Shown here: in pieces, positions 41,399 to 62,437 of the stretch
Layout of the letters: the number at the start of each line of letters is the position of its first letter
Numbering within the stretch: the first letter of the stretch is position 1
Sequence record: NC_048053.1
Strand: one strand, 5' to 3'
Length of the DNA: 64,000 nt
Made by a program: the position numbers and the translations under genes
Notes under the pieces: model-generated
Told to the model about the DNA's origin: nothing
Database searches by the model: none
The model's input: the letters and a program-made list of their open reading frames with translations, nothing else

Positions 41399-42181
41399 AT
41401 GTTAACCATTCAGCGTAAAACCAGTTTCAGCGGCATCACTTTTTCTTTCATGCGCAAAGGCAAACTGATTGCCGCGCATGTTTCTGGCCTGCTGCTGTCG
41501 CAAGCCATTGCTAAAATGTACGGCAGCGGCATGACCGTTTGTATTCAGTACAAAGACGGACGCGAAGTTGAAGATCAAGTAATCATGCGTCGCGTTATTC
41601 AGGCAGATCCGATGCAGGATTCTGAAAGTTTTATTGATATGTGTCTGTGCCTCGATTTGGGTACGGCCTTCGCCGAAGTTCCGTTGATTGCTATGCGCAG
41701 CAAAACGAAACCGGATGAAAAAGCTGTCAAGCGCGTTATCGTTCGCGATGCTGATCGCATGGAGAAGTTTTTAATAGAACAGCGTGACGCGATTGAAGCG
41801 CAATCGCTCTACGAATTCCTCGTTGATAGCGAACTGCGAAACGTGCGCCATGTTGTTCGCTTCCTCGGCCTCACTGTTGAGGGTGGCACCGAAGTTGAAG
41901 ATCATGCAGACGAGATTGTAGAAATTCCTCGTTCTGTTTGGCATGAGCGTTTCATCGAAAACGAATTGAAGTTAGATCCGGATGCGCCTCTTGTTTCTCT
42001 GGCGCAGGACGCGATTTATTATATGGAAAATAAAAATCGCGTTGACGCGTCTTTGTCGTTTGACGATGAAGACGATTTCGATTTCGAAGATGAAAAGGAA
42101 ACCTTCACCGAAGATTTTGATGGTGACAACATCGAAGAAACAATTCTTTCTGACGATAGCGGTCTGGAAGAAGATGCGTAA
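41399..42181 (+). CDS. hypothetical protein with acidic tail
   Basis: ggag RBS; D/E-rich C terminus. Confidence 0.75.
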   Translation: MLTIQRKTSFSGITFSFMRKGKLIAAHVSGLLLSQAIAKMYGSGMTVCIQYKDGREVEDQVIMRRVIQADPMQDSESFIDMCLCLDLGTAFAEVPLIAMRSKTKPDEKAVKRVIVRDADRMEKFLIEQRDAIEAQSLYEFLVDSELRNVRHVVRFLGLTVEGGTEVEDHADEIVEIPRSVWHERFIENELKLDPDAPLVSLAQDAIYYMENKNRVDASLSFDDEDDFDFEDEKETFTEDFDGDNIEETILSDDSGLEEDA

Positions 42182-44672: not shown

Positions 44673-46289
44673 ATGGCAATTGCAACCTCTACCAAACTGA
44701 TCGGCAAAAACATCGTTCTGCTGGACGGCACCAAAACCAAAATCACTGACGCAATGGCAACTGGTTACAAAGTTGCTGATCGTTCTGTTCGTGTTGCGTC
44801 AAAACAAGTTGCTAAGAAAGGCGCTTGCTATTATGAGATTCCGGTTACGTCTCTGCGTGAACTGATCGATTCCGGTGAAGGTTACGTTTCTTTCGCTGAC
44901 AAAGCGATGCAGAAAAAAGTTGGCACTGACGCTTTCCTCGAAAAGCCTGCTAAAACTTCTGGCCGCAAACCGAAAGAAGAAAAATCTTCCGGTCGCAAAC
45001 CTAAAGAAGAGAAAACTTCTAACGTGCGTCCGAAACGTGGCAGCAAACCTACCAAAGAAGAAGACGACGCCGAAGATAAAGCGTCCCGCCGTGTTAAACG
45101 TCGCGGCAATAGCGATGCAGGTTACGGCGCTCTGGCTGAGTTTCTGATCAACGGCGGTAACAGCAAGAAGAAAGTTTCCCTTGCTGCTATCGATCAGGAT
45201 CTGGCAACCGTTCTTACTGAACGTCTGGTTAGCACGGTAAAAGAAACTTCGCTGGCGAAATTCGACGGCAACAACGCAATGATTCAAAACGCATTCGATG
45301 TTGGTTACTCAACTGAATTCGATGCTACTGGCGGCGACGTTCGCGTAACACTGAACATCAAATACGCGCTGGAACAGCCTGAGCCGGAAGAAGTAAACGG
45401 TGGTTTCGAAATTTCTCCGGAACTGGCGAAGAAAATCAAAGCGCGTGTTGGTAAAACCGTTGGTAAGAAACTCGCGGCTGCAATCGCTGAACACCTCGGC
45501 GTTGAAGCGTCCGATATGACGGCTGGTACTCTCCTGTCGCGTGAGGGTGAAGATGGTCAGTTTGTTTTCTGTGGCGCAAGCGGCGAAGACAATAACAAAG
45601 CTGTACTGTTTAACACCGAAAGCGAAAAATTCCGCACTGTAGGCGGCGCTTCTCTGGCTAACTACTCTATCGTTGAGGAAGACGAAGAGGAAGAAGAGTC
45701 TGAGGAAGAAGAGGAAGAAGAGATTGAGGAAGAGGAAACCGAAGAAGAGGAAGACGACGCCGAAGGCGAAGACGATTCCGAAGACGGTGATGACGATTCC
45801 GAAGACGGTGACGATGACGCAGAAGGCGAAGATGACGAGGAAGATTCTTTCGAATACGCTTCCGTAAATAAAAAGCAACTCGCTAATGTGAACAAAAAAA
45901 TCACGTCTAAAAATCTGCCGATGCTGTCTAAACTGTGGCGCGTTCCGCAAAGCGCTCTGGTCACTGGCCTGAAACTGACTGATGGTGATGATACTTTCAT
46001 CTTCATTGGTATGGATGATGACGGCGATCTGCTGGTAGTTGAAGAAGGCGCGAAAGAAGTTGTTGCGTTTGACGCTGACGATATTCAAAGCCTGTCTGAT
46101 TACTCTCCGGTTGTTGGTGAAGCAGAAGACGACGCAGAAGGCGAAGACGAAGACTTCGAAGATGACGGCGAAGATTACGACGACATGGACATTGAAGAAC
46201 TGCGCGATGTTGTAGTTCAGAAAGGTCTGGCAAAAGTTCGCGCCGCCGAAAACATGACGGAGAAAAAACTCCGCTCACTGCTGAAATAA
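44673..46289 (+). CDS. 538-aa modular acidic protein (beta-rich N domain, two internal repeats, D/E tracts, C-terminal HeH-like module)
   Basis: aggag RBS, strong codon bias; YDDMDIEELRDVVVQKGL..MTEKKLRSLL. Confidence 0.8.
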   Translation: MAIATSTKLIGKNIVLLDGTKTKITDAMATGYKVADRSVRVASKQVAKKGACYYEIPVTSLRELIDSGEGYVSFADKAMQKKVGTDAFLEKPAKTSGRKPKEEKSSGRKPKEEKTSNVRPKRGSKPTKEEDDAEDKASRRVKRRGNSDAGYGALAEFLINGGNSKKKVSLAAIDQDLATVLTERLVSTVKETSLAKFDGNNAMIQNAFDVGYSTEFDATGGDVRVTLNIKYALEQPEPEEVNGGFEISPELAKKIKARVGKTVGKKLAAAIAEHLGVEASDMTAGTLLSREGEDGQFVFCGASGEDNNKAVLFNTESEKFRTVGGASLANYSIVEEDEEEEESEEEEEEEIEEEETEEEEDDAEGEDDSEDGDDDSEDGDDDAEGEDDEEDSFEYASVNKKQLANVNKKITSKNLPMLSKLWRVPQSALVTGLKLTDGDDTFIFIGMDDDGDLLVVEEGAKEVVAFDADDIQSLSDYSPVVGEAEDDAEGEDEDFEDDGEDYDDMDIEELRDVVVQKGLAKVRAAENMTEKKLRSLLK

Positions 46290-48138: not shown

Positions 48139-49378
48139 AGATCGTCAAAAGCTGTTAAAACTTTATGGCTGGAAAATCATTGATACCTCTCCCAAGTATC
48201 TTGAAACTTCCAAAATGGTTTGTGGCGTTCGCCACGTTCGAACCAAGTACGGTGCGCGTGAACAAGTGTACGATGTTTTGTTTCCGCGCATTCGTGCAAA
48301 AACGGTTCTGCGTTTGTTTAAAAACTTGCGCCGTGGTCAACGTGGAATTCTGCTTGAAGAACTTTCAATTCTGTTTGAGTTGGGATTGGGTGTTCCGAAG
48401 CAGAAACAAATCGCCGATTATATCCTGCATCTTAACGATGTGGATGATCCAGAAGTCGGGATTAAGTACATTGGCAAACTGATAAAACAGTATATCGCCA
48501 ATTACAAGTTTTCGATGGATGATCATGATTACATGTACTGCGCTCAATTCACTGAGCAATTGTTGCTGATGAAGAAATTCATCGGGAAGACGAAACAGAA
48601 TGTGAAGAAATCTGTGCGCGTTCCGGAAGGAAAGCCGTGTGTCATGGTTTACTCACTAACTGATTTCAACGGTGCGAAATTCAGTTTGGTAGATGCTTAC
48701 GCTTTCTCATCAAACGGTTTTCCGATACCGATTTCAACATCTGTGATGCGAAAAGAGTTTGGTGCTGTTCCGCGCCAGTTTAACAGCTACGCGTTGAAGT
48801 CGCACGGACAGTATATGTTGGTTTTCGGCATTCTGTATTGGAACGAAGACGGCGAAGAAAACTTCCAGCACATGCAGACGCTGGACGATGATGAATACGA
48901 AGTTCTGGTTGACCATTACGATAAGTATTGTTCGAAAGAACTTCTTGCGGCTCGCAAGTACCGCAACGTTGATCGTGAAGTGCATAACGCTCATCGTCAC
49001 GCAATCGAAGTTCTGGCAGTGAAAGAAGACGCAACCAAAAAAGAAAGGCGTTTGGTGCGCGAAGCGGAAACCTATTTCGCTGAACGTGATAAAGCTGTAA
49101 AGCAACTATCACGATTGGAACGAAAGGCCGCAAGCAAACTTGCTGAATCTGGTCCGGTTGCTTCTGCTAAGTTCTTTGCTCTCGATATCGGGGCAATTGG
49201 AATTAGTCGTAAGCTGCGTACATTGGTTAGCACTCCGCCGGAAGTCCTCGCGAAAAGTTTAAACGCTTGGGGATTCACAACGGCGCTGTCTGCGAATCAT
49301 AAATGTCTATCGTCTCGGATCTATTACGGCGTAACTTCTACGCGCCGTAGCTGGCAAATTGAAACGGAGAAAAAATAA
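48110..49378 (+). CDS. hypothetical protein (422 aa)
   Basis: gaggg RBS; long ORF. Confidence 0.75.
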   Translation: MFLGHLLTFEDRQKLLKLYGWKIIDTSPKYLETSKMVCGVRHVRTKYGAREQVYDVLFPRIRAKTVLRLFKNLRRGQRGILLEELSILFELGLGVPKQKQIADYILHLNDVDDPEVGIKYIGKLIKQYIANYKFSMDDHDYMYCAQFTEQLLLMKKFIGKTKQNVKKSVRVPEGKPCVMVYSLTDFNGAKFSLVDAYAFSSNGFPIPISTSVMRKEFGAVPRQFNSYALKSHGQYMLVFGILYWNEDGEENFQHMQTLDDDEYEVLVDHYDKYCSKELLAARKYRNVDREVHNAHRHAIEVLAVKEDATKKERRLVREAETYFAERDKAVKQLSRLERKAASKLAESGPVASAKFFALDIGAIGISRKLRTLVSTPPEVLAKSLNAWGFTTALSANHKCLSSRIYYGVTSTRRSWQIETEKK

Positions 49379-52338
49379 TGAATTCCTCTCAAACTTTTGG
49401 AACGGCGTCGCACACTGCATCTGTTACCGATCAGAATCTGAATGCAGGTTCTCCGGCAACTAAAAGCACGGTAATTGTGGTGCTGTGTCCGACTGTAAAC
49501 GGCAACCAAATTTTCCGTGCGGAAAATAACGGTAATGTTTCTCAAACTGTCGCGCAGGGTAAAGCTCTCAATCGTCTGACAGATCTTCTGTCGATGGCGG
49601 GGGATAACGCTGGTCATGAACTGATGAGCGCTGCCGCTTCTATTGATGAGCGCTGCAAGCTGAAAGACAGTGCTGCGATGATTCTCCGCTATACTGTAAA
49701 TGGTAGTGTAGAGCGTCTCCAGAAAACTCTGTCTGAGGCGTTGTTTAAGGTCGGCGAAAAAGCTGCAAATGATAATACTACGTTAGCGTCGTATGCCAGT
49801 CGTTTTGGTGTTCATGCAATCGCAGTATCTGCGGAAAGTAATTCTTACGCAGTCGTTACAGCGATTCGTGATCAACTGGAAGCGTTCGACCGCAACGAAA
49901 GCAATTTTGTTGTTGCGCAGAAAGCAAGTGTTGAGCAAATCAATGCTCCGGTTATCGACTGGTCTGCAACTTCCGCAAATGTTGTTCTGGAAGGTGCTGC
50001 GTTAAGTTTTGTAGTTCGCTCGGAAAAAACCCGCGTGAATTTCCTGATTAATCCTATTAAGGGGAATAATGTTGTGAGTAACGATCAGAAAGCTCTGTCT
50101 GTTTTCAGCCGCGAGAATCAGGCTTCCGTAACTATGGAAGAAAAAGTCGCTGCACTTGAAGCACTCGGTTACGATCTCGGCGCTATGCCGGATGAAGAGA
50201 TCGCGCTGTCTTATGATAGCGAGCGTGTTGATTTTCTGGAAGGCGCAGGTGTTGAAGTGAATTCCAGCGACGAAGGCGAAACTGACGACGCCGAAGAAGG
50301 TGAAGAAGAATCCGAAGAAGGTGAAGAGGAAGAGGAAGAAGAAGACGAAGAAGAATTCTCCGCTTCTGAAACTCTGGCAGAAATTCTGACTAACGCCCAA
50401 CTGGATCGCGCTCAACTGAAAAAGCTGGTGTTCCTCGCAGGTGGTAAAGTGTTTACCACTGACACCGAAGAAAGTCTGACGGTGAAACTGCTGGAACTGG
50501 TCGAAGAAAAAGACTACAGCGAATTCTTCCAGTTTGCGCTGGACGCTAACGAACGTCTCGGCGGCGTTGATGGCTTTGCTGACTTCCTGCACGCGGAAAG
50601 CGTTCTGGCTACCGACGAAGATGAGGACGACGAAGGCGAAGAAGGCGAAGAAGGCGAAGACGAGGATGATTCTGATGAAGATGATTCCGAAGACGAAGAC
50701 GAAGATGATTCTGGCGAAGACGAAGGTGAAGACGAAGATGATTCCGAAGAAGATCTTTCTTTCAACGCTGTGGTAGAATTCATCGAACTTATCGGCGGCG
50801 ATCTGAATCGCGAAGTAATTCGCGCAATTGCTCGCTCCGAAAGTTTCGGCCTGAAAACTTACAAGAACGAAGACGCTGCTGCGATTTTCGAACGTGTAGT
50901 TGAAGTGCTGAACAACAACGAAATCTCTCCGGAAGATTTCGAACAACTGATTCACGATCTGGCGCAGATTGAAGTTGTTGCCGATGCGTATCCGGAATGG
51001 GCTGAGTACGAAGTCAATCCGACGGACTACACTGAACTGTTTGCCTACGAAGGCGGTTCTCTGACTCACGAACAGCGCGTTGCAGCGCTGGAAGCTGCCG
51101 GAAACGATCTCGAAGGTATGGGCATGGTTGCCGTGCTGAAACTTTTCGAAGACTATCGCCGTGAAAATGGTTACGGTCAGGAAAGTGAAGAAGCCGAAGA
51201 CGAAACCTATGCGCTGGATTCCGGTGAAGGTGAAACCGACGACGAAGGCGAAGAAGCTGGCGACGAAGAATCCGAAGAGTCGGAAGAAGAATCTGAGGAA
51301 GAAGAATCCGAAGACGAAAACGACGAAGCGTTTGTTTCTGAATCTTCTGAAAACGATCTCGGTACTTTCCTGCGTGTGCGTCAGGAACAAATGCTGTTGG
51401 TCAACTTCGCGCTGACTGATCGCAGTACCTTCGAAGATCTCGCCGAAGAACTTCGCGACCAGAACGGTGTTGATTATCGTGTACCAATCAACATGAACGA
51501 CGAAGCAGAAGGTTCTATGTACCTGCCGCTGACTGTCGCGAGCGATTTGCTGTCCGGTTCCGCTGCGCTTCCGTTTATGTCTGATCGCAAAACTTTCAAC
51601 GTAGAAGATTACGCTGAAAAAATGGCTAACACTATGCGCGGTCAAATCTCGGCGCTGCTGTATGAAGGCCGTCTGGAAGCTGGACAAGATCCGTATACTA
51701 GCGGTTTAGTCCTCGGTGATTTCGTCGAAGATGAAGACGAAGATCTGAATGAGGATGAACTGAGTTCGGAATATCTGAGCGAACTGGTTGGCGATCATAT
51801 TCCGATGGCTTCTCTGTATAACGCACATGTTGGCGTGCGTCCGGTTGTTGTCGATACCGAAAGCACTGTTTTGAACACTATCGTTCTTAACATTGCAATG
51901 CCTTGCATTTGGGGCATCGGCAAGAAGAAAGTAAAAGATCTGGTAATCAGCACTTACAATCGTGTGCTTGCGCACATCGGCGAAACTGATATTAAAGTCT
52001 ATGTCGGTTTCACCCTGAATGCTGGTTCTCTGGTTTCTGATGAAAACCTGCAATCGGTTGTTCGCTCTGTCGGCGAAATGGCGAGTGAAGAAATCGCTGT
52101 TCACTCCTTCACTACCAACGATGTTCAACGCATCGAAGAAAGTGAAGATCTGGTTGAAGCTGCGCATTCTGTCGGCACTGAAAATCTGCCGCTGGCGCTG
52201 TTGTCCTCCGGTATCGCTGACGCTGCATTTGCGAACGGCGGTGATCTGATTGTTATCCTGTCTCCTGTTGGTGACAGTGACGACGAAGATGATTCTGACT
52301 CTGATGAAGATGAAGATGAAGACGAGTCCGAAGAGTAA
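49378..52338 (+). CDS. 986-aa highly acidic modular protein with HeH-like modules and internal repeats
   Basis: four D/E tracts; repeated VAALEA.G.DL..M. Confidence 0.82.
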   Translation: MNSSQTFGTASHTASVTDQNLNAGSPATKSTVIVVLCPTVNGNQIFRAENNGNVSQTVAQGKALNRLTDLLSMAGDNAGHELMSAAASIDERCKLKDSAAMILRYTVNGSVERLQKTLSEALFKVGEKAANDNTTLASYASRFGVHAIAVSAESNSYAVVTAIRDQLEAFDRNESNFVVAQKASVEQINAPVIDWSATSANVVLEGAALSFVVRSEKTRVNFLINPIKGNNVVSNDQKALSVFSRENQASVTMEEKVAALEALGYDLGAMPDEEIALSYDSERVDFLEGAGVEVNSSDEGETDDAEEGEEESEEGEEEEEEEDEEEFSASETLAEILTNAQLDRAQLKKLVFLAGGKVFTTDTEESLTVKLLELVEEKDYSEFFQFALDANERLGGVDGFADFLHAESVLATDEDEDDEGEEGEEGEDEDDSDEDDSEDEDEDDSGEDEGEDEDDSEEDLSFNAVVEFIELIGGDLNREVIRAIARSESFGLKTYKNEDAAAIFERVVEVLNNNEISPEDFEQLIHDLAQIEVVADAYPEWAEYEVNPTDYTELFAYEGGSLTHEQRVAALEAAGNDLEGMGMVAVLKLFEDYRRENGYGQESEEAEDETYALDSGEGETDDEGEEAGDEESEESEEESEEEESEDENDEAFVSESSENDLGTFLRVRQEQMLLVNFALTDRSTFEDLAEELRDQNGVDYRVPINMNDEAEGSMYLPLTVASDLLSGSAALPFMSDRKTFNVEDYAEKMANTMRGQISALLYEGRLEAGQDPYTSGLVLGDFVEDEDEDLNEDELSSEYLSELVGDHIPMASLYNAHVGVRPVVVDTESTVLNTIVLNIAMPCIWGIGKKKVKDLVISTYNRVLAHIGETDIKVYVGFTLNAGSLVSDENLQSVVRSVGEMASEEIAVHSFTTNDVQRIEESEDLVEAAHSVGTENLPLALLSSGIADAAFANGGDLIVILSPVGDSDDEDDSDSDEDEDEDESEE

Positions 52339-53168: not shown

Positions 53169-53744
53169 ATGGCTAAATCCAAGTCCACCTCACTGGTTCC
53201 GAAACGTATTGACCGCATCACGAAAAAAGCTGGCGCGATTGCGCAGGTCAAATCTAAACAAACTGATCTGGCTCACGATATCGAAATCTCGACTCGTGGC
53301 GCACACGAAGTTTCAGGTTTCGTAATCGAAACTACTGCTGACGGTAGCGTAACCATTCGCCACAAAAAAGGCGCTGGTAGCTCCAAACAGATCGTAAGCA
53401 CGTTCACCAAAAACCAAATCATTAGCTTTATCGGTGAAGCTGGTGAAATGGGTCAACTGCTGGTTGACGCATACATGGTTGTTCAGGTGATTCGCGGTCA
53501 AACTGTAAAAGTTAAAGACGATGTGATTGTTGCAACTGATATTCAGACTGGCGAAGTCACTCGCATTGCAACCAACATTCCGGGCTACGACGTTCGTGCA
53601 ATTGTTGACGAGGCTGTTGCTTCTAAAAAGTACGGCACTCCGGTTGCATCCGAAAAGAAAAAAGGCGCTAAGGCAGAAAAAATTGCCAAAGGCGGCAAAG
53701 ATAAGTCCGGTAAAAAGAAAAAGAAGTCTGACGAAAACTTCTAA
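53169..53744 (+). CDS. hypothetical protein, possible Sm/Hfq-like beta barrel, basic termini
   Basis: IEISTRGAHEVSGFVIET..VTIRH..STFTKNQIISFI. Confidence 0.55.
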   Translation: MAKSKSTSLVPKRIDRITKKAGAIAQVKSKQTDLAHDIEISTRGAHEVSGFVIETTADGSVTIRHKKGAGSSKQIVSTFTKNQIISFIGEAGEMGQLLVDAYMVVQVIRGQTVKVKDDVIVATDIQTGEVTRIATNIPGYDVRAIVDEAVASKKYGTPVASEKKKGAKAEKIAKGGKDKSGKKKKKSDENF

Positions 53745-53887
53745 TTCGGTTCCGGCCTGAATCTGTAAAGTAACGTTGAAGGACAGAATCTGTAAATCAA
53801 TTCTGTCAGACAGAAACTGTAAACAGTGAATGTCAAACGCCACTGATTAATTTCGGTGGCGTCAGTTAAAAACATTTTTCTCTTAAT

Positions 53888-53896
53888 CTGTAAATA
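53888..53896 (+). promoter_or_regulatory. CTGTAAATA motif upstream of acidic gene 53950
   Basis: exact intergenic copy; near-copies CTGTAAA at 53763, 53790, 53817. Confidence 0.55.
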
Positions 53897-53949: not shown

Positions 53950-54750
53950 ATGGCTAAAGCAAAGAAAACCTCTAACGTGGCAATGGAAACTCTGGCTAAA
54001 ATGGCTGGCCTGCTGGTTGAAGCGGCTGCCGATGCAGAAGTTGCAGAACTTCTCTCCGAAGCTGGTCTGACTGTTGCCGCTAAAGGTAAAGGCAAAGCTA
54101 AAGCTAAAGCTGAACCGAAAGCAAAAGGCGGCAAGAAAAAGAAAGTGACTGCCGCACAAATCGTTGAAGCCATCGAAGATGGTGAGTCCATCGAACTCGA
54201 AGGCACTGACGAAAAAGTTCTGCGCGAGGCCGTGGTCAAAGCAAAACTGACCAGTAAGAAAAAAGCGGAGAGCCTCGATGAAGAGGAACTGCTGGAACTG
54301 ATTCAGGAAGCGTTTGGTTCGTCTGACGAAGATGAAGACGACGAAGACGAGGATGATTCTTATGAAGATGATTCCGATGATGAAGACGGCGACGACGAAG
54401 ACGACGAGGATGATGAAGACTCGGACGACGACGAAGACGGCGACGACGAAGACGACGAAGACGGCGACGACGAAGACGACGAAGACGACGACGAAGACGA
54501 CGAAGATGATGAGGACGACGAAGACGAGGACGAAGATGAAGATCGTGATCTGGAAGACCTCGACGAAGACGAACTCCGCGCGTTAGCCATCGAAGAAGGC
54601 GTGTTCACCAAAGCGCAGGCCAAAAAGAAAGATGAAGATGCACTCCGCGAAGCACTGGAAGCGCACTTCGCTGGTGACGACGATGAAGACGAAGACGAAG
54701 ACGACGAAGACTTCGACGACGAAGACGAAGACGACGAAGACGACGAGTAA
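53950..54750 (+). CDS. polyampholyte protein: basic N-terminal patch, two HeH-like modules, ~75-residue near-pure D/E tract
   Basis: translation; aagga RBS; strong codon bias. Confidence 0.8.
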   Translation: MAKAKKTSNVAMETLAKMAGLLVEAAADAEVAELLSEAGLTVAAKGKGKAKAKAEPKAKGGKKKKVTAAQIVEAIEDGESIELEGTDEKVLREAVVKAKLTSKKKAESLDEEELLELIQEAFGSSDEDEDDEDEDDSYEDDSDDEDGDDEDDEDDEDSDDDEDGDDEDDEDGDDEDDEDDDEDDEDDEDDEDEDEDEDRDLEDLDEDELRALAIEEGVFTKAQAKKKDEDALREALEAHFAGDDDEDEDEDDEDFDDEDEDDEDDE

Positions 54751-54921
54751 TTAATCATCGACGGCACGCCCCGCTAAGTTAAATGACGAGCGCGGGGCAA
54801 AAAATCTTCAAAGATTTTTGAAGAAAATTTTGTAGAAGTATGTTGAACATGCTAATGTACTTCTACGCAGAAAACGAATTTCTGTTTTTCTCCACAACGA
54901 ATTTTTATACTGAGGTATATC

Positions 54922-55443
54922 ATGACTAAGAAAGTTATTTCCGGCCTGAACAAACAAATCAAATCCATCGAAAAATCCGATGCCGCTCTGGTGAAGACCA
55001 TCGAAGGTTTGCAGAAACAGCGTGAAAATCTGGCGTCTACCAAAGACGGTCTGAACGAACAGGTTGCTGCGCTGTCGGGCGAAGCTGCTCCGGTTAAAGG
55101 TAAAGCTAAGGCTGAACCGAAAGCTGCTAAAGGTAAAGCTAAAGCTGAACCGAAAGCTGCTAAAGGCAAAAAAGCTGCCGAAGAAAAACCGGCTAAAGTG
55201 AAAAAAGAAAAAGCCGCTAAAACTGAAAAGCCTGCTAAGGCTGACAAGAAAGCTGCGAAAGGCGAAGGCAAAAAAGCCAAAGCTGAAAAGCCTGCCAAAG
55301 CTGATAAGAAAGCTGCGAAAGGCGAAGGCAAAAAAGCCAAAGCTGAAAAGCCTGCTAAGGGCAAAAAAGTGAAAGGCGAAAAAGCCAGCAAGAAAAAAGG
55401 CAAAAACGCCGACGCAGGTTTTGAATTCGAACTGGACGATTAA
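54922..55443 (+). CDS. histone H1-like K/A/P-rich protein with N-terminal coiled coil
   Basis: 51 of 173 residues Lys by hand count; KGKAKAEPKAA and EKPAKADKKAAKGEGKKAKA repeats; gaggt RBS. Confidence 0.8.
   Translation: MTKKVISGLNKQIKSIEKSDAALVKTIEGLQKQRENLASTKDGLNEQVAALSGEAAPVKGKAKAEPKAAKGKAKAEPKAAKGKKAAEEKPAKVKKEKAAKTEKPAKADKKAAKGEGKKAKAEKPAKADKKAAKGEGKKAKAEKPAKGKKVKGEKASKKKGKNADAGFEFELDD
55096..55360 (+). repeat. in-frame tandem repeats (33 bp x2; 60 bp x2 plus partial)
   Basis: 55096-55161 and 55222-55360; copies differ mainly at synonymous sites. Confidence 0.85.
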
Positions 55444-55996: not shown

Positions 55997-58072
55997 ATGG
56001 CAAAGAAAGCCGAAAAAATAACTGTTCTGAAAAAGAAACCTGTTTCTAAAGCAGTAGCGAAAGAAGTTAAGAGCAAGAAGAATGCTCAAGACGGATTCAC
56101 CGCGCTTTCTGCTATGGAAGGGTTGCGTAAAAACGCTGGCATGTATCTCGGCGAACCGGGCGAGGACATGGCGTATCGTAGCGTTAAAGAAGTTGTAGAT
56201 AACGCATACGATGAAGCAGTAGCAGGACGAAATAAATTAATCGAAGTCATCTTCAATGAAGACAAAGATATTTATATCGTCGCTGATGGCGCTGGCGGTA
56301 TTCCAACAACGCTGAAAAAACTTTATGACGGTACAACCGAAGCGATCATGACTTCCGCATTTACGCGTGTTCACGCTGGCGGTAAATTTGATAATGACGC
56401 ATACAAAACTTCTGCGGGTACTCACGGTGTAGGTGTTACTGCCGTTAACGCCGTATCCGAAAGAATTCGTGTGTGGTCAAACTTCGATAAGAAAACAAAA
56501 GGCATGGAATATTCCAAAGGTGAGTGCGTAACTGCAATCAAGAATTGGGAAGTCGATGCCGATGTAATGAAGCTGCTACAAGATCCGGCGAAGAAATACG
56601 GAACGATTGTTGCGTGGACACTTGATCAAACTGTTGTGAGTGTTGATGCGCGTCGTGGTAAGAAACTGCCGAAGGATTACACTCACGCAAAACTTAATGT
56701 TGAGCGCACGCGTAATTGGCTGCAAGCAATGTCGGATCTTAATCCGGGATTGGAAATTCGCTTCACGCATATCAAAGATAAAAAAGGTAAGCGTCAAGTT
56801 TTCCTGAATAAGAAAACTATGGGCGACGTTATCAAACGTATCGCCGAAGAACGCGAATTAGAACTGGACGGAAAGCCGTTTGAGTTGAAAACTGATTTCG
56901 TTAGTCTCGCGATCAGTTGGGCTGACTATCCGGATTCTGATCTTCTGCAAACGTTCGTCAACACATCGCCGACTATTGATCACGGTTGGCACGTAACAGG
57001 ATTCCGTAGCGCACTGGAAGCCGCGCTTAAACCTTTCCTGCCTACACCGAAGAAAGGAAGCAAAGCAAAACCAAAATCATTTACCGCCAGCGATTTGTTA
57101 GTTGGCGCGATTGGTATGTTCGACTGGCGAATGCACGGCGCACAATATACTTCGCAGGTGAAAGATAAACTTGCAAGTCGTGTTGAAAAAGAAGTTCAAG
57201 CGATTGTTGAAAAGCCGTTGACTGAATTCTTTGCTAAGAATAAATCTCTTGCGAAGAAAATCATTAAACGCGCAGAAGCAATGATGAAAGGTCGTGATGA
57301 ATTGAGCGCTGTTATTCGTTCAATGGCAGACACGAAGAAGAAAGTTGCAGGTAACTCGCTTCCTTCTTTCCTCGAAGCTGCGCCTCGCTGTAAACCGTTT
57401 GAGCGTGAATTAGTTGTGGTGGAAGGTGATTCCGCTGGCGGTACTGGTAAGAACGCTCGCGATCCTTTCTATCAAGAAATCATGAAAGCAGGCGGTAAAC
57501 CTCTTAACGGTTTGAAAGCTCCGCTGGCAAAAGTTCTTGTGCATAAACAGGTGCAAGGTTTGTTGGTGAGTATCGGCGCGGATTTAAAAACGCTCGATCC
57601 AAAAGCAGAAGCGCCAACGTTGAGCACGGAAAAATTGCGTATCGGCAATCTGTTGTTCCTCGCAGATGCTGACCCGGATGGCAGTCACATTAACACGCTG
57701 TTCCTTGCTGTTATTTATCGACTGTTGCCGGATATGATGCGCGAAGGCCGTGTGTGGGTTGTTGATGCTCCGCTATATAATGTGATGTACAAAGGCAAAC
57801 ACTATGGCGGCATGACGTTTGAAGAATGTCGTGCGATTGCACCTAGCGCGGTAAAAGATAGTGAGATCGTTCGTGCAAAAGGTTGGGGTGAAGTTAACCC
57901 TGATGTTCTGCGTGCGATTGCTTTCGATCCGGAAACGCGCCGACTCATTCGAATCAATCCGTTTGAGAATGCAGAGCAAGAACGTTTCTTCCGTGGTGTT
58001 GTTGCGGAGGATGCGATCTATCGCCGCCGTCTGTTAGGTCTGGTTGAAGTAAATGCAGGGGATGATGAATAA
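55997..58072 (+). CDS. parE: type IIA DNA topoisomerase ATPase/TOPRIM subunit (GyrB/ParE family)
   Basis: [51 protein letters not shown]. Confidence 0.92.
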
Positions 58073-59754
58073 TGGCAACCATTAAGCCGAAGAAAAACGC
58101 GAAGCCAGAAAAAACGAAAGTTAAACCTGCTGCGAAATCGAAAGCCGTTGCGAAAAAATCAAAAGGCATTGAAGTTGCTGATATCAAGACGGGCAAAAAA
58201 CTCAAGAAGAAAACTAATACTGCAATCAGCACTGTAGTAGAAAGTAAGTATCCGCTCAAAGGACAGAAGCAAGAAAACATTCGCGATGAAGGTTTGGCTG
58301 CTTTTACTGAGCGTGAGTTGCGTAAGTACGGATCTTACGTTGTTGAAGATCGTGCCATTCCAGATTTTCGCGATGGGTTGAAACCTGTTCACCGTGCGAT
58401 CATTTGGGCAATGTCAGATCTCAACCTGTTACCTTCTGGTGGGTATAAAAAGAGTGCGCGTGTTGTTGGTGATGCTCTCGGTAAATATCATCCTCATGGT
58501 GATAGCGCGTGTTATGGCGCAATGGTTACGGTCGCTAACACCGTGCCTCCTGCGGTAGACGGTCAGGGCAATTGGGGTACACCAACTGATCCGTTCGCTG
58601 CGATGCGTTATACCGAAGCAAAACAAAGTCGTTTCACGCAAATGTTTTTGCTGGATAAAAACTATTTGCAAGTTACACCGATGGTAAGCAACTTCTCAAA
58701 CGATATGAAGTTGCCGCTGCATCTTCCTGCGCTGCTGCCTTTCATGCTGTTTGCTGGCACCGTTCCCGCTCCGGCCTATGGTGTGAAGTGTGGGAACCCA
58801 ACGTTCACTTTTGCTAGTGTTGCGCGTGTTGTGATTGATATGCTTAACGGTGTTGAATACGATCACAAAAAACTCGCGAAGACGTTAGTTATTCAGCATG
58901 AGTTTGGTTGTAAAAATATTACTTCCAGTAGCGAAATGTTGAACCTGATGCGAACCGGGCGCGGCAAAGTAACATACGAACCGGAAATGAAAATCGATCT
59001 GAAACGCAAAACGATTGTGATTCAGACTTTCGTTCCGCTCGGTTTCGCGTCGGAAGATGGCATTGAAAAAATGCTGATGAAGTTCTCAACCATTCAGGGC
59101 GTATCAACTGCGCATTCTGTTGGCGGTGAGCGAAACCCGGACGCGGGAACTTATGGTTGTGCTGTTGAAGTTGTTGCTGCGCGTGGCGTCGATGAAGATC
59201 GATTCTACGAAATCGCGCAAGAAGTTCAAAAGCTAGTTACCAAATCTGTTTCGTATATTCTCGGTGTTACTGTTCGTCACGGCGACAAGCCGAACAGCTT
59301 TAAGTATCTCGATTATCTCTCATACTTCAAAGCATGGGTGACGTATCGCAAGAAACTTGAAGTGCGTATGCTGGATTGGTTGATAGCGCGTGCGCAAAAA
59401 GAACTTCACTTACAGGAGGTTTATTTATTCGCGGTAGAGAACAAAGACAAGTTGCTTAAAGCACTGCCTAAAGTTCTGTCCTCGAAGACTCCAGATGAAG
59501 CTCTTGCAAAAGCAATCAAACTCCCGGTTGAAGATGCAAAAATAATTTTGGATCGTCAAGTGCGTAAGTTGGCAACACTTGAAAAAGCCGATCTGGTTGC
59601 GAAGATTAAAGCGTTGAAAGCAGATATCGCAGGCTGGCAGAAAGGGCTGAAAGCTCCGGGCAAGTATGCAGCGAAAGACACCGAAGATCGTGTTGTTCGT
59701 TACTTGAAAAATCCGGATGCTAATAAGCCTAAACTCGGCTACGGAAAACTGTAA
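58072..59754 (+). CDS. parC: type IIA DNA topoisomerase breakage-reunion subunit (ParC/GyrA family), no C-terminal pinwheel
   Basis: [49 protein letters not shown] (catalytic Tyr). Confidence 0.92.
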
Positions 59755-59833
59755 ATACTAATTGGGATCTGTAGACTAGGAATATTCCTAATACTGTAAA
59801 TAATAGTAATTAGGAACTGTAAACAGATCCCTT
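59749..59833 (+). promoter_or_regulatory. cluster of CTGTAAATA motifs inside a long inverted repeat
   Basis: CTGTAAATA at 59749 and 59794, CTGTAAACA at 59817; gggatctgt...acagatccc; palindrome taggaatattccta. Confidence 0.5.
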
Positions 59834-61626: not shown

Positions 61627-62437
61627 TTGCCGTGGCCTTAATCGTGATGTGCTTATCCCTTCCGCTACGAAGCCTTGCGAAAGTCTCGGCAAGCTGGAAG
61701 ACAGTAAGATGTGCAAACATTTTCGCACGAACACTTACGATCTGCGGCGACTGATGGAAGAGGGCGGGGATGGTCTGGTCGCTCTGTTCCAACTGTTCGG
61801 AAATATGGAAGAGAAAGATCTGCGTATCATTTCTATGATGTTGTTGCGTGAGGCGAATACACGTAAGCATGGCGTGAAAATGGGCCAGCCTGTTTTCATT
61901 CGTTATCGTGGGCGTGAATCTCGCAACTACCTGAACAATTTTATGGCGGCACGTATTCTGGATATCGACGACAAAGAAATTCGTTTGATTTCTGAAACAG
62001 GCAATATCGTGCTTACTTACCCTAACACCGGATTGGCTGGCCCGTCTGTTTATTCGAAGTCAGAATTTAAAACGCTGGCGAAGAAAATGAAAGCGGAAGG
62101 CAAGATTAACGATCCAGAACGCGAGATCAAAACCGTTAAGAAATATTTGCCAGAAGAAGATGTGAAATTTAAAGTTCCAACTATTCTGGATGGATTCTCT
62201 GTTCCCAACATGGACGAAGTTGTGAAAGGCAAGGGCGGCAAGAAGAAACGTAAGACGAACACTCTCATTGATATCGTAAGCATGATTGATAGTGGTAGTC
62301 TGATGGGCGCTCACGCTGATGACGAAGATGGTGCATTGGAGTTAGGCGAAGACCAATACCAAAGCACAACGAAAACTAAGGTCAAGCCTAAGAAGAAAAA
62401 ACGTAAGGCTGGCCCGATTGAGTTAAGTGATTATTGA
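61559..62437 (+). CDS. hypothetical protein with N-terminal Cys4 zinc site and basic tail
   Basis: TCGDC..KPC..MCKHF. Confidence 0.72.
   Translation: MSSKNFRTVDLKEMVKSTVTCGDCRGLNRDVLIPSATKPCESLGKLEDSKMCKHFRTNTYDLRRLMEEGGDGLVALFQLFGNMEEKDLRIISMMLLREANTRKHGVKMGQPVFIRYRGRESRNYLNNFMAARILDIDDKEIRLISETGNIVLTYPNTGLAGPSVYSKSEFKTLAKKMKAEGKINDPEREIKTVKKYLPEEDVKFKVPTILDGFSVPNMDEVVKGKGGKKKRKTNTLIDIVSMIDSGSLMGAHADDEDGALELGEDQYQSTTKTKVKPKKKKRKAGPIELSDY

Follow-up and report, generated by a model that had tools for sequence, protein, structure and literature searches.

What might a very large phage gain from two neighbouring genes, one encoding a protein crowded with lysine and the other a protein crowded with aspartate and glutamate? 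The question is raised by gp309 and gp310 of Dickeya phage vB_DsoM_JA29 (NC_048053.1, 253,323 bp), both of which are annotated as 'hypothetical protein' (HOU08_gp309 and HOU08_gp310) and both of which lie in the stretch of 64,000 nucleotides (nt) analysed here (record positions 189,324-253,323, hereafter the window). An earlier, sequence-only reading had likened gp310 to histone H1 and gp309 to the acidic chaperones prothymosin and nucleoplasmin. We find that gp309 and gp310 are a real, conserved and oppositely charged pair whose genes adjoin in every relative examined and are apparently switched on together with the genes for DNA replication. Tentatively, we favour the view that gp310 would be a polycationic DNA binder and gp309 its polyanionic partner, the two acting on intracellular DNA during replication. 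The parts of the locus to which the argument refers are as follows.

53169..53744, + strand: gp308, a third member of the module, with orthologues directly upstream of the acid/base pair in all relatives
53950..54750, + strand: gp309, acidic protein of 266 residues, net charge -97 (sequence, composition, AlphaFold2 model)
53950-54081, + strand: gp309 N-terminal helical domain, residues 1-44
54082-54147, + strand: gp309 Lys-rich patch, residues 45-66
54148-54318, + strand: gp309 helical module 1, residues 67-123
54325-54543, + strand: gp309 poly-Asp/Glu tract, residues 126-198
54547-54672, + strand: gp309 helical module 2, residues 200-241
54679-54747, + strand: gp309 acidic tail with one conserved Phe, residues 244-266
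54922..55443, + strand: gp310, basic protein of 173 residues (sequence, composition, repeats, orthologue alignment)
54922-55086, + strand: gp310 leucine zipper, residues 1-55 (heptad register)
55087-55416, + strand: gp310 Lys/Ala/Pro/Glu repeat tail, residues 56-165 (tandem repeats)
55417-55440, + strand: gp310 acidic/aromatic tip GFEFELDD, residues 166-173 (sequence)

JA29, of the genus Salmondvirus, is a jumbo myovirus of the PaBG/Lu11 'Lupandier' group, which is separate from the nucleus-forming Chimalliviridae and for which no chimallin nucleus has been reported (PMC7412058, PMC12390700), in keeping with the earlier supposition that this phage lacks a proteinaceous nucleus. For comparison we used Erwinia phages Alexandra, Yoloswag and Y3, Yersinia phage fHe-Yen9-02, Dickeya phage AD1 and about 20 IMG/VR contigs, together with phage NCTB, Pseudomonas phages PaBG and Lu11, and two metagenomic contigs of 203 and 246 kb. 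The set of 25 related loci that were scanned spans phages of Dickeya, Erwinia and Yersinia along with NCTB and the two metagenomic jumbo contigs; PaBG and Lu11 were checked separately. Searches by tblastn with gp309 or the NCTB orthologues returned only close relatives, owing to low-complexity masking, and the PaBG and Lu11 loci were reached solely by way of a metagenomic gp308-like intermediate.

The basic protein has a simple and highly regular design. Its 173 residues include 51 Lys, 36 Ala, 7 Pro and 18 Glu, for a net charge of +27. Between residues 9 and 51 the heptad register runs without a break, with Leu or Ile at positions 9, 16, 23, 30, 37, 44 and 51, and L9, L23, L37 and L51 are invariant in the alignment of orthologues. 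Because of this unbroken register and these invariant leucines, the N-terminus is a leucine zipper rather than a generic coiled coil; a Pfam scan gave sub-threshold matches to generic coiled coils only. The coiled coil of about 50 residues and the Lys-rich Lys/Ala/Pro tail that had been described for this gene are thus both present, the former as a zipper of seven heptads. At the DNA level the tail is built from a 33-bp unit (2.3 copies, 95% identity) and a 60-bp unit (2.4 copies, 92%), and five codons vary between the copies, four of them synonymously and one non-synonymously, so that the reported divergence of the repeats mainly at synonymous sites also holds.

Proteins of this design are scarce. 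A HMMER profile scan of 1.84 billion representative proteins yielded 10 clusters at E < 0.001, and the family, which corresponds to PHROG 38087 (category function unknown), is therefore rare and confined to PaBG/Lu11-like phages. Its members combine a zipper of about 50 residues and a Lys/Ala/Pro/Glu tail with a short C-terminal tip in which Phe or Tyr stands amid Asp and Glu; eight of the nine family sequences that were read have this full architecture, the exception (P0036) being without the tip. A word-index protein search with the zipper alone produced one candidate and zero matches. When the family alignment was used as the query, three true relatives were returned among hits that were mostly Lys/Ala-rich ribosomal proteins (uL4, bL9, uS17 and eS24). 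The NCTB orthologue (BN7874_079, L010:7514-8098) is called 'Large-conductance mechanosensitive channel' in its public record, a label that looks wrong because the protein has no membrane segment and clearly consists of a zipper followed by a Lys/Pro/Ala-rich tail.

The acidic protein is organised in blocks. It contains 70 Asp and 56 Glu (126 acidic residues in 266), and its longest acidic tract spans residues 126-198, giving 73 residues at 90% Asp/Glu where a near-pure tract of about 75 had been announced. A single-sequence AlphaFold2 model of low overall confidence (predicted template modelling score 0.30) contains two helix-short helix-helix modules at residues 88-122 and 206-241, with a predicted local distance difference test score (pLDDT) of about 87-93, and assigns no secondary structure to the acidic tract. 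Two modules of the HeH type had been proposed to flank this tract; helical modules do flank it in the model, but the HeH identity finds no support, since neither gp309 nor its isolated modules match HeH, SAP or Rho_N in Pfam, and a Foldseek search with the model returned nothing at E < 4, the modules being too short for a decisive fold search. Every acidic orthologue has the Lys-rich patch and, besides a long poly-Asp/Glu tail, a short amphipathic helical domain; helical modules number from 0 to 4. The protein is PHROG 30618, again of function-unknown category. The record of the PaBG orthologue (O152_gp125, L036:5664-6116) carries the note 'similar to Utp1 assembly factor for eukaryotic small ribosomal subunits', which is probably a compositional match between poly-Asp/Glu tracts. 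The two JA29 proteins had also been said to share the 10-residue peptide KGKAKAEPKA. Their longest common peptide is in fact the 8-mer KAKAEPKA (23 of 24 nt identical), a length equalled in 18 of 2000 composition-preserving shuffles; it is not kept in orthologues and can be set aside as a functional motif.

Conservation of the locus extends to a third gene. The order gp308-like, acidic, basic is adjacent in 25 of the 25 loci scanned and likewise in PaBG and Lu11. In gp308 a beta-rich core (residues about 35-155) is joined to a C-terminal tail rich in Lys, and the protein closes with a conserved SDENF. Its core is modelled by AlphaFold2 from 14 sequences at a pLDDT of about 76-90, and may consist of two small barrels; a fold search against the PDB gave no match (best E-value 0.076, TM-scores < 0.2), and in BFVD it matches only PaBG, Alexandra and two further entries. 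In the pair itself, the repeat units of the basic protein vary by lineage, yet wherever its frame was cleanly called it carries a net charge of +26 to +32, from which it follows that selection acts on charge and not on sequence. The net charge of the acidic partner ranges from -84 to -106 across NCTB and the enterobacterial clade, with values of -88 and -55 in two distant contigs. Pairwise ratios of non-synonymous to synonymous substitution rates (dN/dS) against three relatives are 0.11-0.15 for gp309 and gp310 with the low-complexity parts included (0.15 for gp309); the comparison of gp310 with the L013 locus was disregarded because its start codon was guessed. Conserved, syntenic and under purifying selection, the two genes make a pair that is more than a chance juxtaposition.

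When the pair is expressed can be read, with caution, from the DNA around it. The relevant elements are these.

53761-53769, 53788-53796, 53815-53823 and 53886-53894, + strand: four copies of the promoter-like motif (A/T)A(A/T)CTGTAAA (motif scan)
53836-53868, upstream of gp309: GC-rich hairpin among the motif copies, without a T-run
54768..54798, + strand: GC-rich hairpin directly 3' of gp309, without a T-run, kept in most relatives (alignment) and not called by the terminator scan
54828..54870, + strand: conserved gp310 leader stem-loop of 17 bp, ending about 50 nt ahead of the start codon
55470..55507, + strand: intrinsic terminator-like hairpin with a 12-bp stem (7 GC pairs) followed by a T-run, closing the gp309-gp310 unit (terminator scan)

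The two GC-rich hairpins might serve in attenuation or processing. The last CTGTAAA lies 62 nt ahead of the gp309 start codon. In the window the motif (A/T)A(A/T)CTGTAAA occurs 17 times where 1.55 occurrences are expected, always on the + (coding) strand (examples are at 1761, 5962, 25772, 32820, 52338, 53761-53894 and 59747-59823), and genome-wide its strand counts of 16:2, 5:27 and 29:3 in three strand blocks follow the direction of transcription. In the form (A/T)A(A/T)CTGTAAA(T) it often overlaps the stop codon of the preceding gene. In JA29 it is found 36-72 nt upstream of the genes for a sigma factor, single-stranded DNA-binding protein (SSB), primase, clamp loader, two DNA polymerases, an NAD-ligase and a recombination endonuclease, and it also precedes nucleotide-metabolism genes; the sigma factor gene that carries it, gp222, is the phage's own. 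The 65-kb tail/baseplate/head block has zero correctly placed copies, and the density of the strict motif there is 0.15 per 10 kb as against 1.0-2.2 elsewhere in the genome. Upstream of the acidic gene the motif is present in 12 of 13 relatives, in one to four copies each, and the Lu11 record labels two copies immediately ahead of the acidic gene 'putative middle/late promoter' (L037:5565-5580 and L037:5643-5658). The basic gene has no CTGTAAA motif of its own, and a promoter scan called no sigma-70 promoter directly upstream of gp309 or gp310. This arrangement suggests that the acidic and basic genes are switched on with those for DNA replication.

Additional control may reside in the gp310 leader. 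Five of the 17 pairs in its stem-loop show compensatory changes (RNAalifold), G-U pairs form on the sense strand only, and pairing is kept in 90.8% of alignment cells as against 83.1% in shuffles, none of 500 of which reach the observed value; the covariation score is 0.306 versus 0.172. The element belongs to no Rfam family. No second copy of the loop block exists in the JA29 genome, and this single occurrence rules it out as a promoter class. It may instead be a site of RNase III-type processing, stabilise the mRNA or serve as a target of autoregulation.

Both genes had been credited with a codon bias of the strong-expression type, a claim that applies squarely to only one of them. When 341 open reading frames (ORFs) were ranked by codon adaptation index against the major head, sheath and tube genes, gp310 came 14th, close to gp301 (12th), gp302 (13th), gp308 (16th) and gp306 (26th), and its effective number of codons is 39.8, the lowest value in the window being that of gp308 (31.7). 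The acidic gene ranks 151st by the same index and shares the bias in part, in that it avoids rare Gly, Thr and Leu codons.

How far, then, do these proteins resemble known ones? In Pfam, NCBIfam and PHROGs neither gp309 nor gp310 has a named family. Neither full-length gp310 nor its parts matched the linker histone family H1/H5 (PF00538) at E up to 10, and no histone emerged from the PDB-sequence profile search; the H1-like feature that gp310 does possess, a Lys/Ala/Pro-rich C-terminal domain, is one of composition only. The chlamydial Hc1 (PF07432) and Hc2 (PF07382) families likewise match neither gp310 nor its isolated tail in Pfam. For gp309 there is no Pfam match to prothymosin, and it has helical modules and a Lys-rich patch; there is no Pfam, PDB or Foldseek match to nucleoplasmin, and its model contains helices only, without a beta core. 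Profile searches of PDB sequences with gp308, gp309 and gp310 gave nothing significant. Given that the family and fold searches are negative, the likeness to H1, prothymosin and nucleoplasmin drawn in the sequence-only reading survives as one of composition and architecture and not of homology.

At that level, the closest parallels to gp310 are Pseudomonas AlgP, the phasin PhaF, and Hc1 and Hc2 of Chlamydia, which like it have a disordered, polycationic tail built from Lys/Ala/Pro-rich repeats from which non-specific DNA binding is expected. The repeats of AlgP and PhaF are of KPAA type, and PhaF in addition joins a leucine-zipper oligomerisation segment to such a tail, so that in repeat composition and zipper gp310 may be analogous to it. 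The phage protein differs from this group in lacking any Pfam match to Hc1, HC2 or phasin and any NCBIfam match, in its extra acidic/aromatic tip, in being phage-encoded, and in always adjoining a gene for a polyacidic partner. The tip recalls bacterial SSB, where a disordered linker also ends in an acidic/aromatic tip, which there recruits partner enzymes (gp310 ends F-[DE]-F-[DE], and gp308 in SDENF), but gp310 lacks an OB fold and has a strongly cationic tail in place of one rich in Gly/Pro/Gln, and its tip aromatics are not terminal. As a pair, gp309 and gp310 resemble H1 with prothymosin-alpha or nucleoplasmin in joining one very basic and one very acidic disordered protein of complementary charge; gp310, however, has no winged helix, and gp309 has no pentamer core and brings its own Lys-rich patch and helical modules. 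Among phages, Hc1-family H1-like Lys-rich proteins matching PF07432 have been predicted in large aquatic 'moraphages' (2025, PMC12619734). Like gp310 these are predicted Lys-rich, DNA-compacting proteins of a large phage, but gp310 does not match PF07432, has an acidic partner of which none is reported there, and comes from another phage lineage.

The genes that follow the pair had also been drawn into the proposal, as the following features lie close by.

55997..59754, + strand: large (gp312) and small (gp313) subunits of topoisomerase II (Pfam and PHROG matches)
55997-56086, + strand: Lys-rich N-terminal extension of gp312, about 30 residues
58072-58242, + strand: Lys-rich N-terminal extension of gp313, about 57 residues
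28308-30473: gp273, acidic, net charge -104
41399-42181: gp296, acidic, net charge -28
44673-46289: gp301, acidic, net charge -59
49378-52338: gp306, acidic, net charge -183

The topoisomerase II gene does begin 554 nt beyond the end of gp310, as the reported 0.5 kb implied, but a small ORF (gp311) and the strong terminator intervene. The pair and topoisomerase II lie next to each other in NCTB and the enterobacterial clade, an arrangement that PaBG, Lu11 and the two metagenomic contigs have lost. The enzyme's proposed membership of the system thus reduces to a positional link that is not universal and is interrupted by a terminator. About 2.5 kb downstream of the pair on the PaBG-like metagenomic contig lies a 558-residue gene with a match to an intein-splicing domain (L006:10986-12662).

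What the topoisomerase does have in common with other JA29 proteins is a lysine-rich terminus, and the composition of its extensions is kept in five or six lineages. We counted as a poly-Lys tag any ten residues that include six or more Lys and lie no further than 40 residues from a terminus. Of 414 JA29 ORFs, nine real ones have such a tag, and five of these have a named function: DnaB, the clamp loader, primase, SSB and a topoisomerase. A looser cut adds RecA and both topoisomerase II subunits. The tagged set comprises gp001, gp194, gp210, gp223, gp224, gp312, gp313 and gp316, the positions concerned inside the window being 1-1325, 55997-56086, 58072-58242 and about 62350-62437. The same tag is seen on three function-unknown proteins, gp117, gp170 and gp175. 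Distant relatives (L006 and L008) have Lys/Arg-rich RecA N-termini and Lys-rich SSB tails, and one SSB-like tail ends in NDDIPF.

Other acidic proteins of the HeH kind had been suggested as further components. Three JA29 proteins, gp273, gp301 and gp306, do combine long acidic tracts with helical modules resembling those of gp309. Some of the acidic proteins (gp273, gp301, gp306 and gp296) have internal exact repeats and C-terminal helical modules, and gp301 shares an N-terminal domain with gp302, which is strongly basic (+31). NCBIfam and Pfam supplied no functional names for the genes neighbouring the pair.

How might such proteins work? Lys/Ala/Pro-repeat tails bind DNA non-specifically in AlgP, PhaF, Hc1 and the C-terminal domain of H1, and polyanionic disordered proteins form tight complexes with tails of this type. 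By analogy with these proteins and their acidic partners, we picture gp308, gp309 and gp310 as a module of abundant, oppositely charged and largely disordered proteins that would be made alongside the replication genes. Dimerisation of gp310 through its seven-heptad zipper would display two polycationic Lys/Ala/Pro/Glu tails, and these could bind and compact DNA, or bind nucleic acid generally, without sequence specificity, in the manner of the H1 C-terminal domain or of AlgP and PhaF; the tip might fold back on the tail or dock a partner, as the SSB tip does. The acidic protein would be a block polyampholyte that combines a Lys-rich patch and small helical modules with a net negative charge of about 100. 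By binding Lys-rich tails electrostatically it could serve as a DNA-mimicking buffer or escort, keeping gp310, and perhaps gp308 and the poly-Lys-tagged replisome enzymes, soluble and tuning their loading on DNA.

Several considerations count against this proposal and keep our support for it tentative. For the entire phage group it is built from sequence evidence and analogy. Neither gp309 nor gp310 is homologous to any DNA-binding family, and the codon adaptation of gp309 is not high. The promoter class is assigned by a motif, one that the Lu11 annotators labelled 'middle/late'. RNA is an equally plausible ligand because ribosomal proteins commonly carry similar Lys/Ala-rich tails. Finally, the evidence that the proteins stay out of the virion is itself weak. 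As no mapping of PaBG gp numbers to RefSeq locus tags was possible, the comparison relied on theoretical masses, and those of the PaBG trio (21,331, 17,383 and 21,761 Da) match none of the 14 identified virion bands (Table 1, PMC7412058); those bands, however, are the Coomassie-visible ones, and very Lys-rich or acidic proteins are easily missed by trypsin digestion and matrix-assisted laser desorption/ionization (MALDI). The literature searched yielded no virion proteome for Y3, JA29 or Alexandra.

That last point bears on the most serious competitor, which we nevertheless think unlikely: gp310 and gp308 may be packaged head proteins, loaded into the capsid and ejected with the DNA, with gp309, gp306 and gp301 serving as core or scaffold proteins or as acidic internal peptides. 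The heads of jumbo phages contain numerous internal proteins, and in T4 basic internal proteins are packaged alongside very acidic peptides, so that JA29 and T4 are alike in having basic proteins and very acidic polypeptides in one phage. Packaging would also suit the very high codon adaptation, just behind that of the major virion proteins, the 'middle/late' label given to the common promoter in Lu11, and the position of the terminase and portal genes, which follow on the same strand after only about 10 kb. What speaks for an intracellular role over packaging, besides the mass comparison in PaBG, is that CTGTAAA stands ahead of replication genes and hardly occurs in the 65-kb structural block, that the genes sit amid replication and topoisomerase genes far from the head protease and the major head gene, and that no PHROG structural category applies. 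The components of the T4 head core differ from these proteins in genomic position and promoter class, and share no homology with them.

Somewhat less probable, in our estimation, is a role in host take-over, in which gp310 would coat and compact the host nucleoid and stop host transcription while gp309 would, as a DNA mimic, titrate nucleoid proteins of the host or defences that target DNA, or would shield phage DNA from gp310. The anatomy of the proteins fits this scheme as well as it fits an action on replicating DNA; chlamydial Hc1 turns transcription off when it is over-produced, and phages are known to counter restriction with acidic proteins that mimic DNA. (The effects of Hc1 are summarised in PMC12619734.) Since this phage group has no protein nucleus (PMC12390700, PMC7412058), some other protection is plausible. 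The promoter motif, however, is the one common to replication genes and not that of a distinct early class, and the scheme does not explain how a non-specific binder would separate host from phage DNA. Known DNA mimics are, moreover, folded, whereas the gp309 tract has no secondary structure in the single-sequence model.

A bolder elaboration, to which we assign a still lower probability, is that the module belongs to a shell-less, charge-driven replication compartment built by PaBG/Lu11-like jumbo phages in place of a chimallin shell. Here gp273, gp301, gp306 and gp309 would act as polyacidic scaffolds, their small helical modules binding DNA, that co-condense with gp310, gp308 and phage DNA, and the poly-Lys tags would be electrostatic addressing signals. 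On SSB, RecA, DnaB, primase, the clamp loader and three topoisomerase proteins, such tags may concentrate the replisome and so be the counterpart of localisation signals.

Least probable of all, and very unlikely in our view, is an RNA- or ribosome-directed function in which the Lys/Ala-rich tail binds rRNA or mRNA and the gp310 leader hairpin is its own autoregulatory target: the ribosomal proteins that dominate the family profile search have similar tails, and the conserved, covarying, sense-strand-specific stem-loop recalls known cases of translational autoregulation by phage nucleic-acid-binding proteins, but the ribosomal matches are compositional only, the neighbours and co-regulated genes encode DNA enzymes, and the poly-Lys tags are on DNA replication proteins.

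The preferred reading, an intracellular DNA module, would add to a sparse literature. Polycationic, H1-like, Lys/Ala/Pro-rich nucleic-acid binders are an already known kind of protein in a few bacteria, with one predicted in an aquatic phage lineage. Histones and Lys-rich or acidic proteins of this kind are unmentioned in a 2026 jumbo-phage review and a 2021 comparative-genomics overview, and in the literature searched we found no description of an obligatory polyacidic partner, of charge conservation across lineages whose repeats differ, of co-regulation with replication or of a poly-Lys-tagged phage replisome. The side-by-side encoding of Lys-rich and acidic disordered proteins suggests a charge-based organisation of viral DNA. 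Should the proteins turn out to be packaged head contents instead, they would offer insight into charge balance in very large capsids. If the pair does organise DNA, it would reveal by what means a large phage that lacks a protein nucleus gives its genome structure or protection, and would provide a simple natural system in which two disordered polyelectrolytes act on DNA in bacteria.

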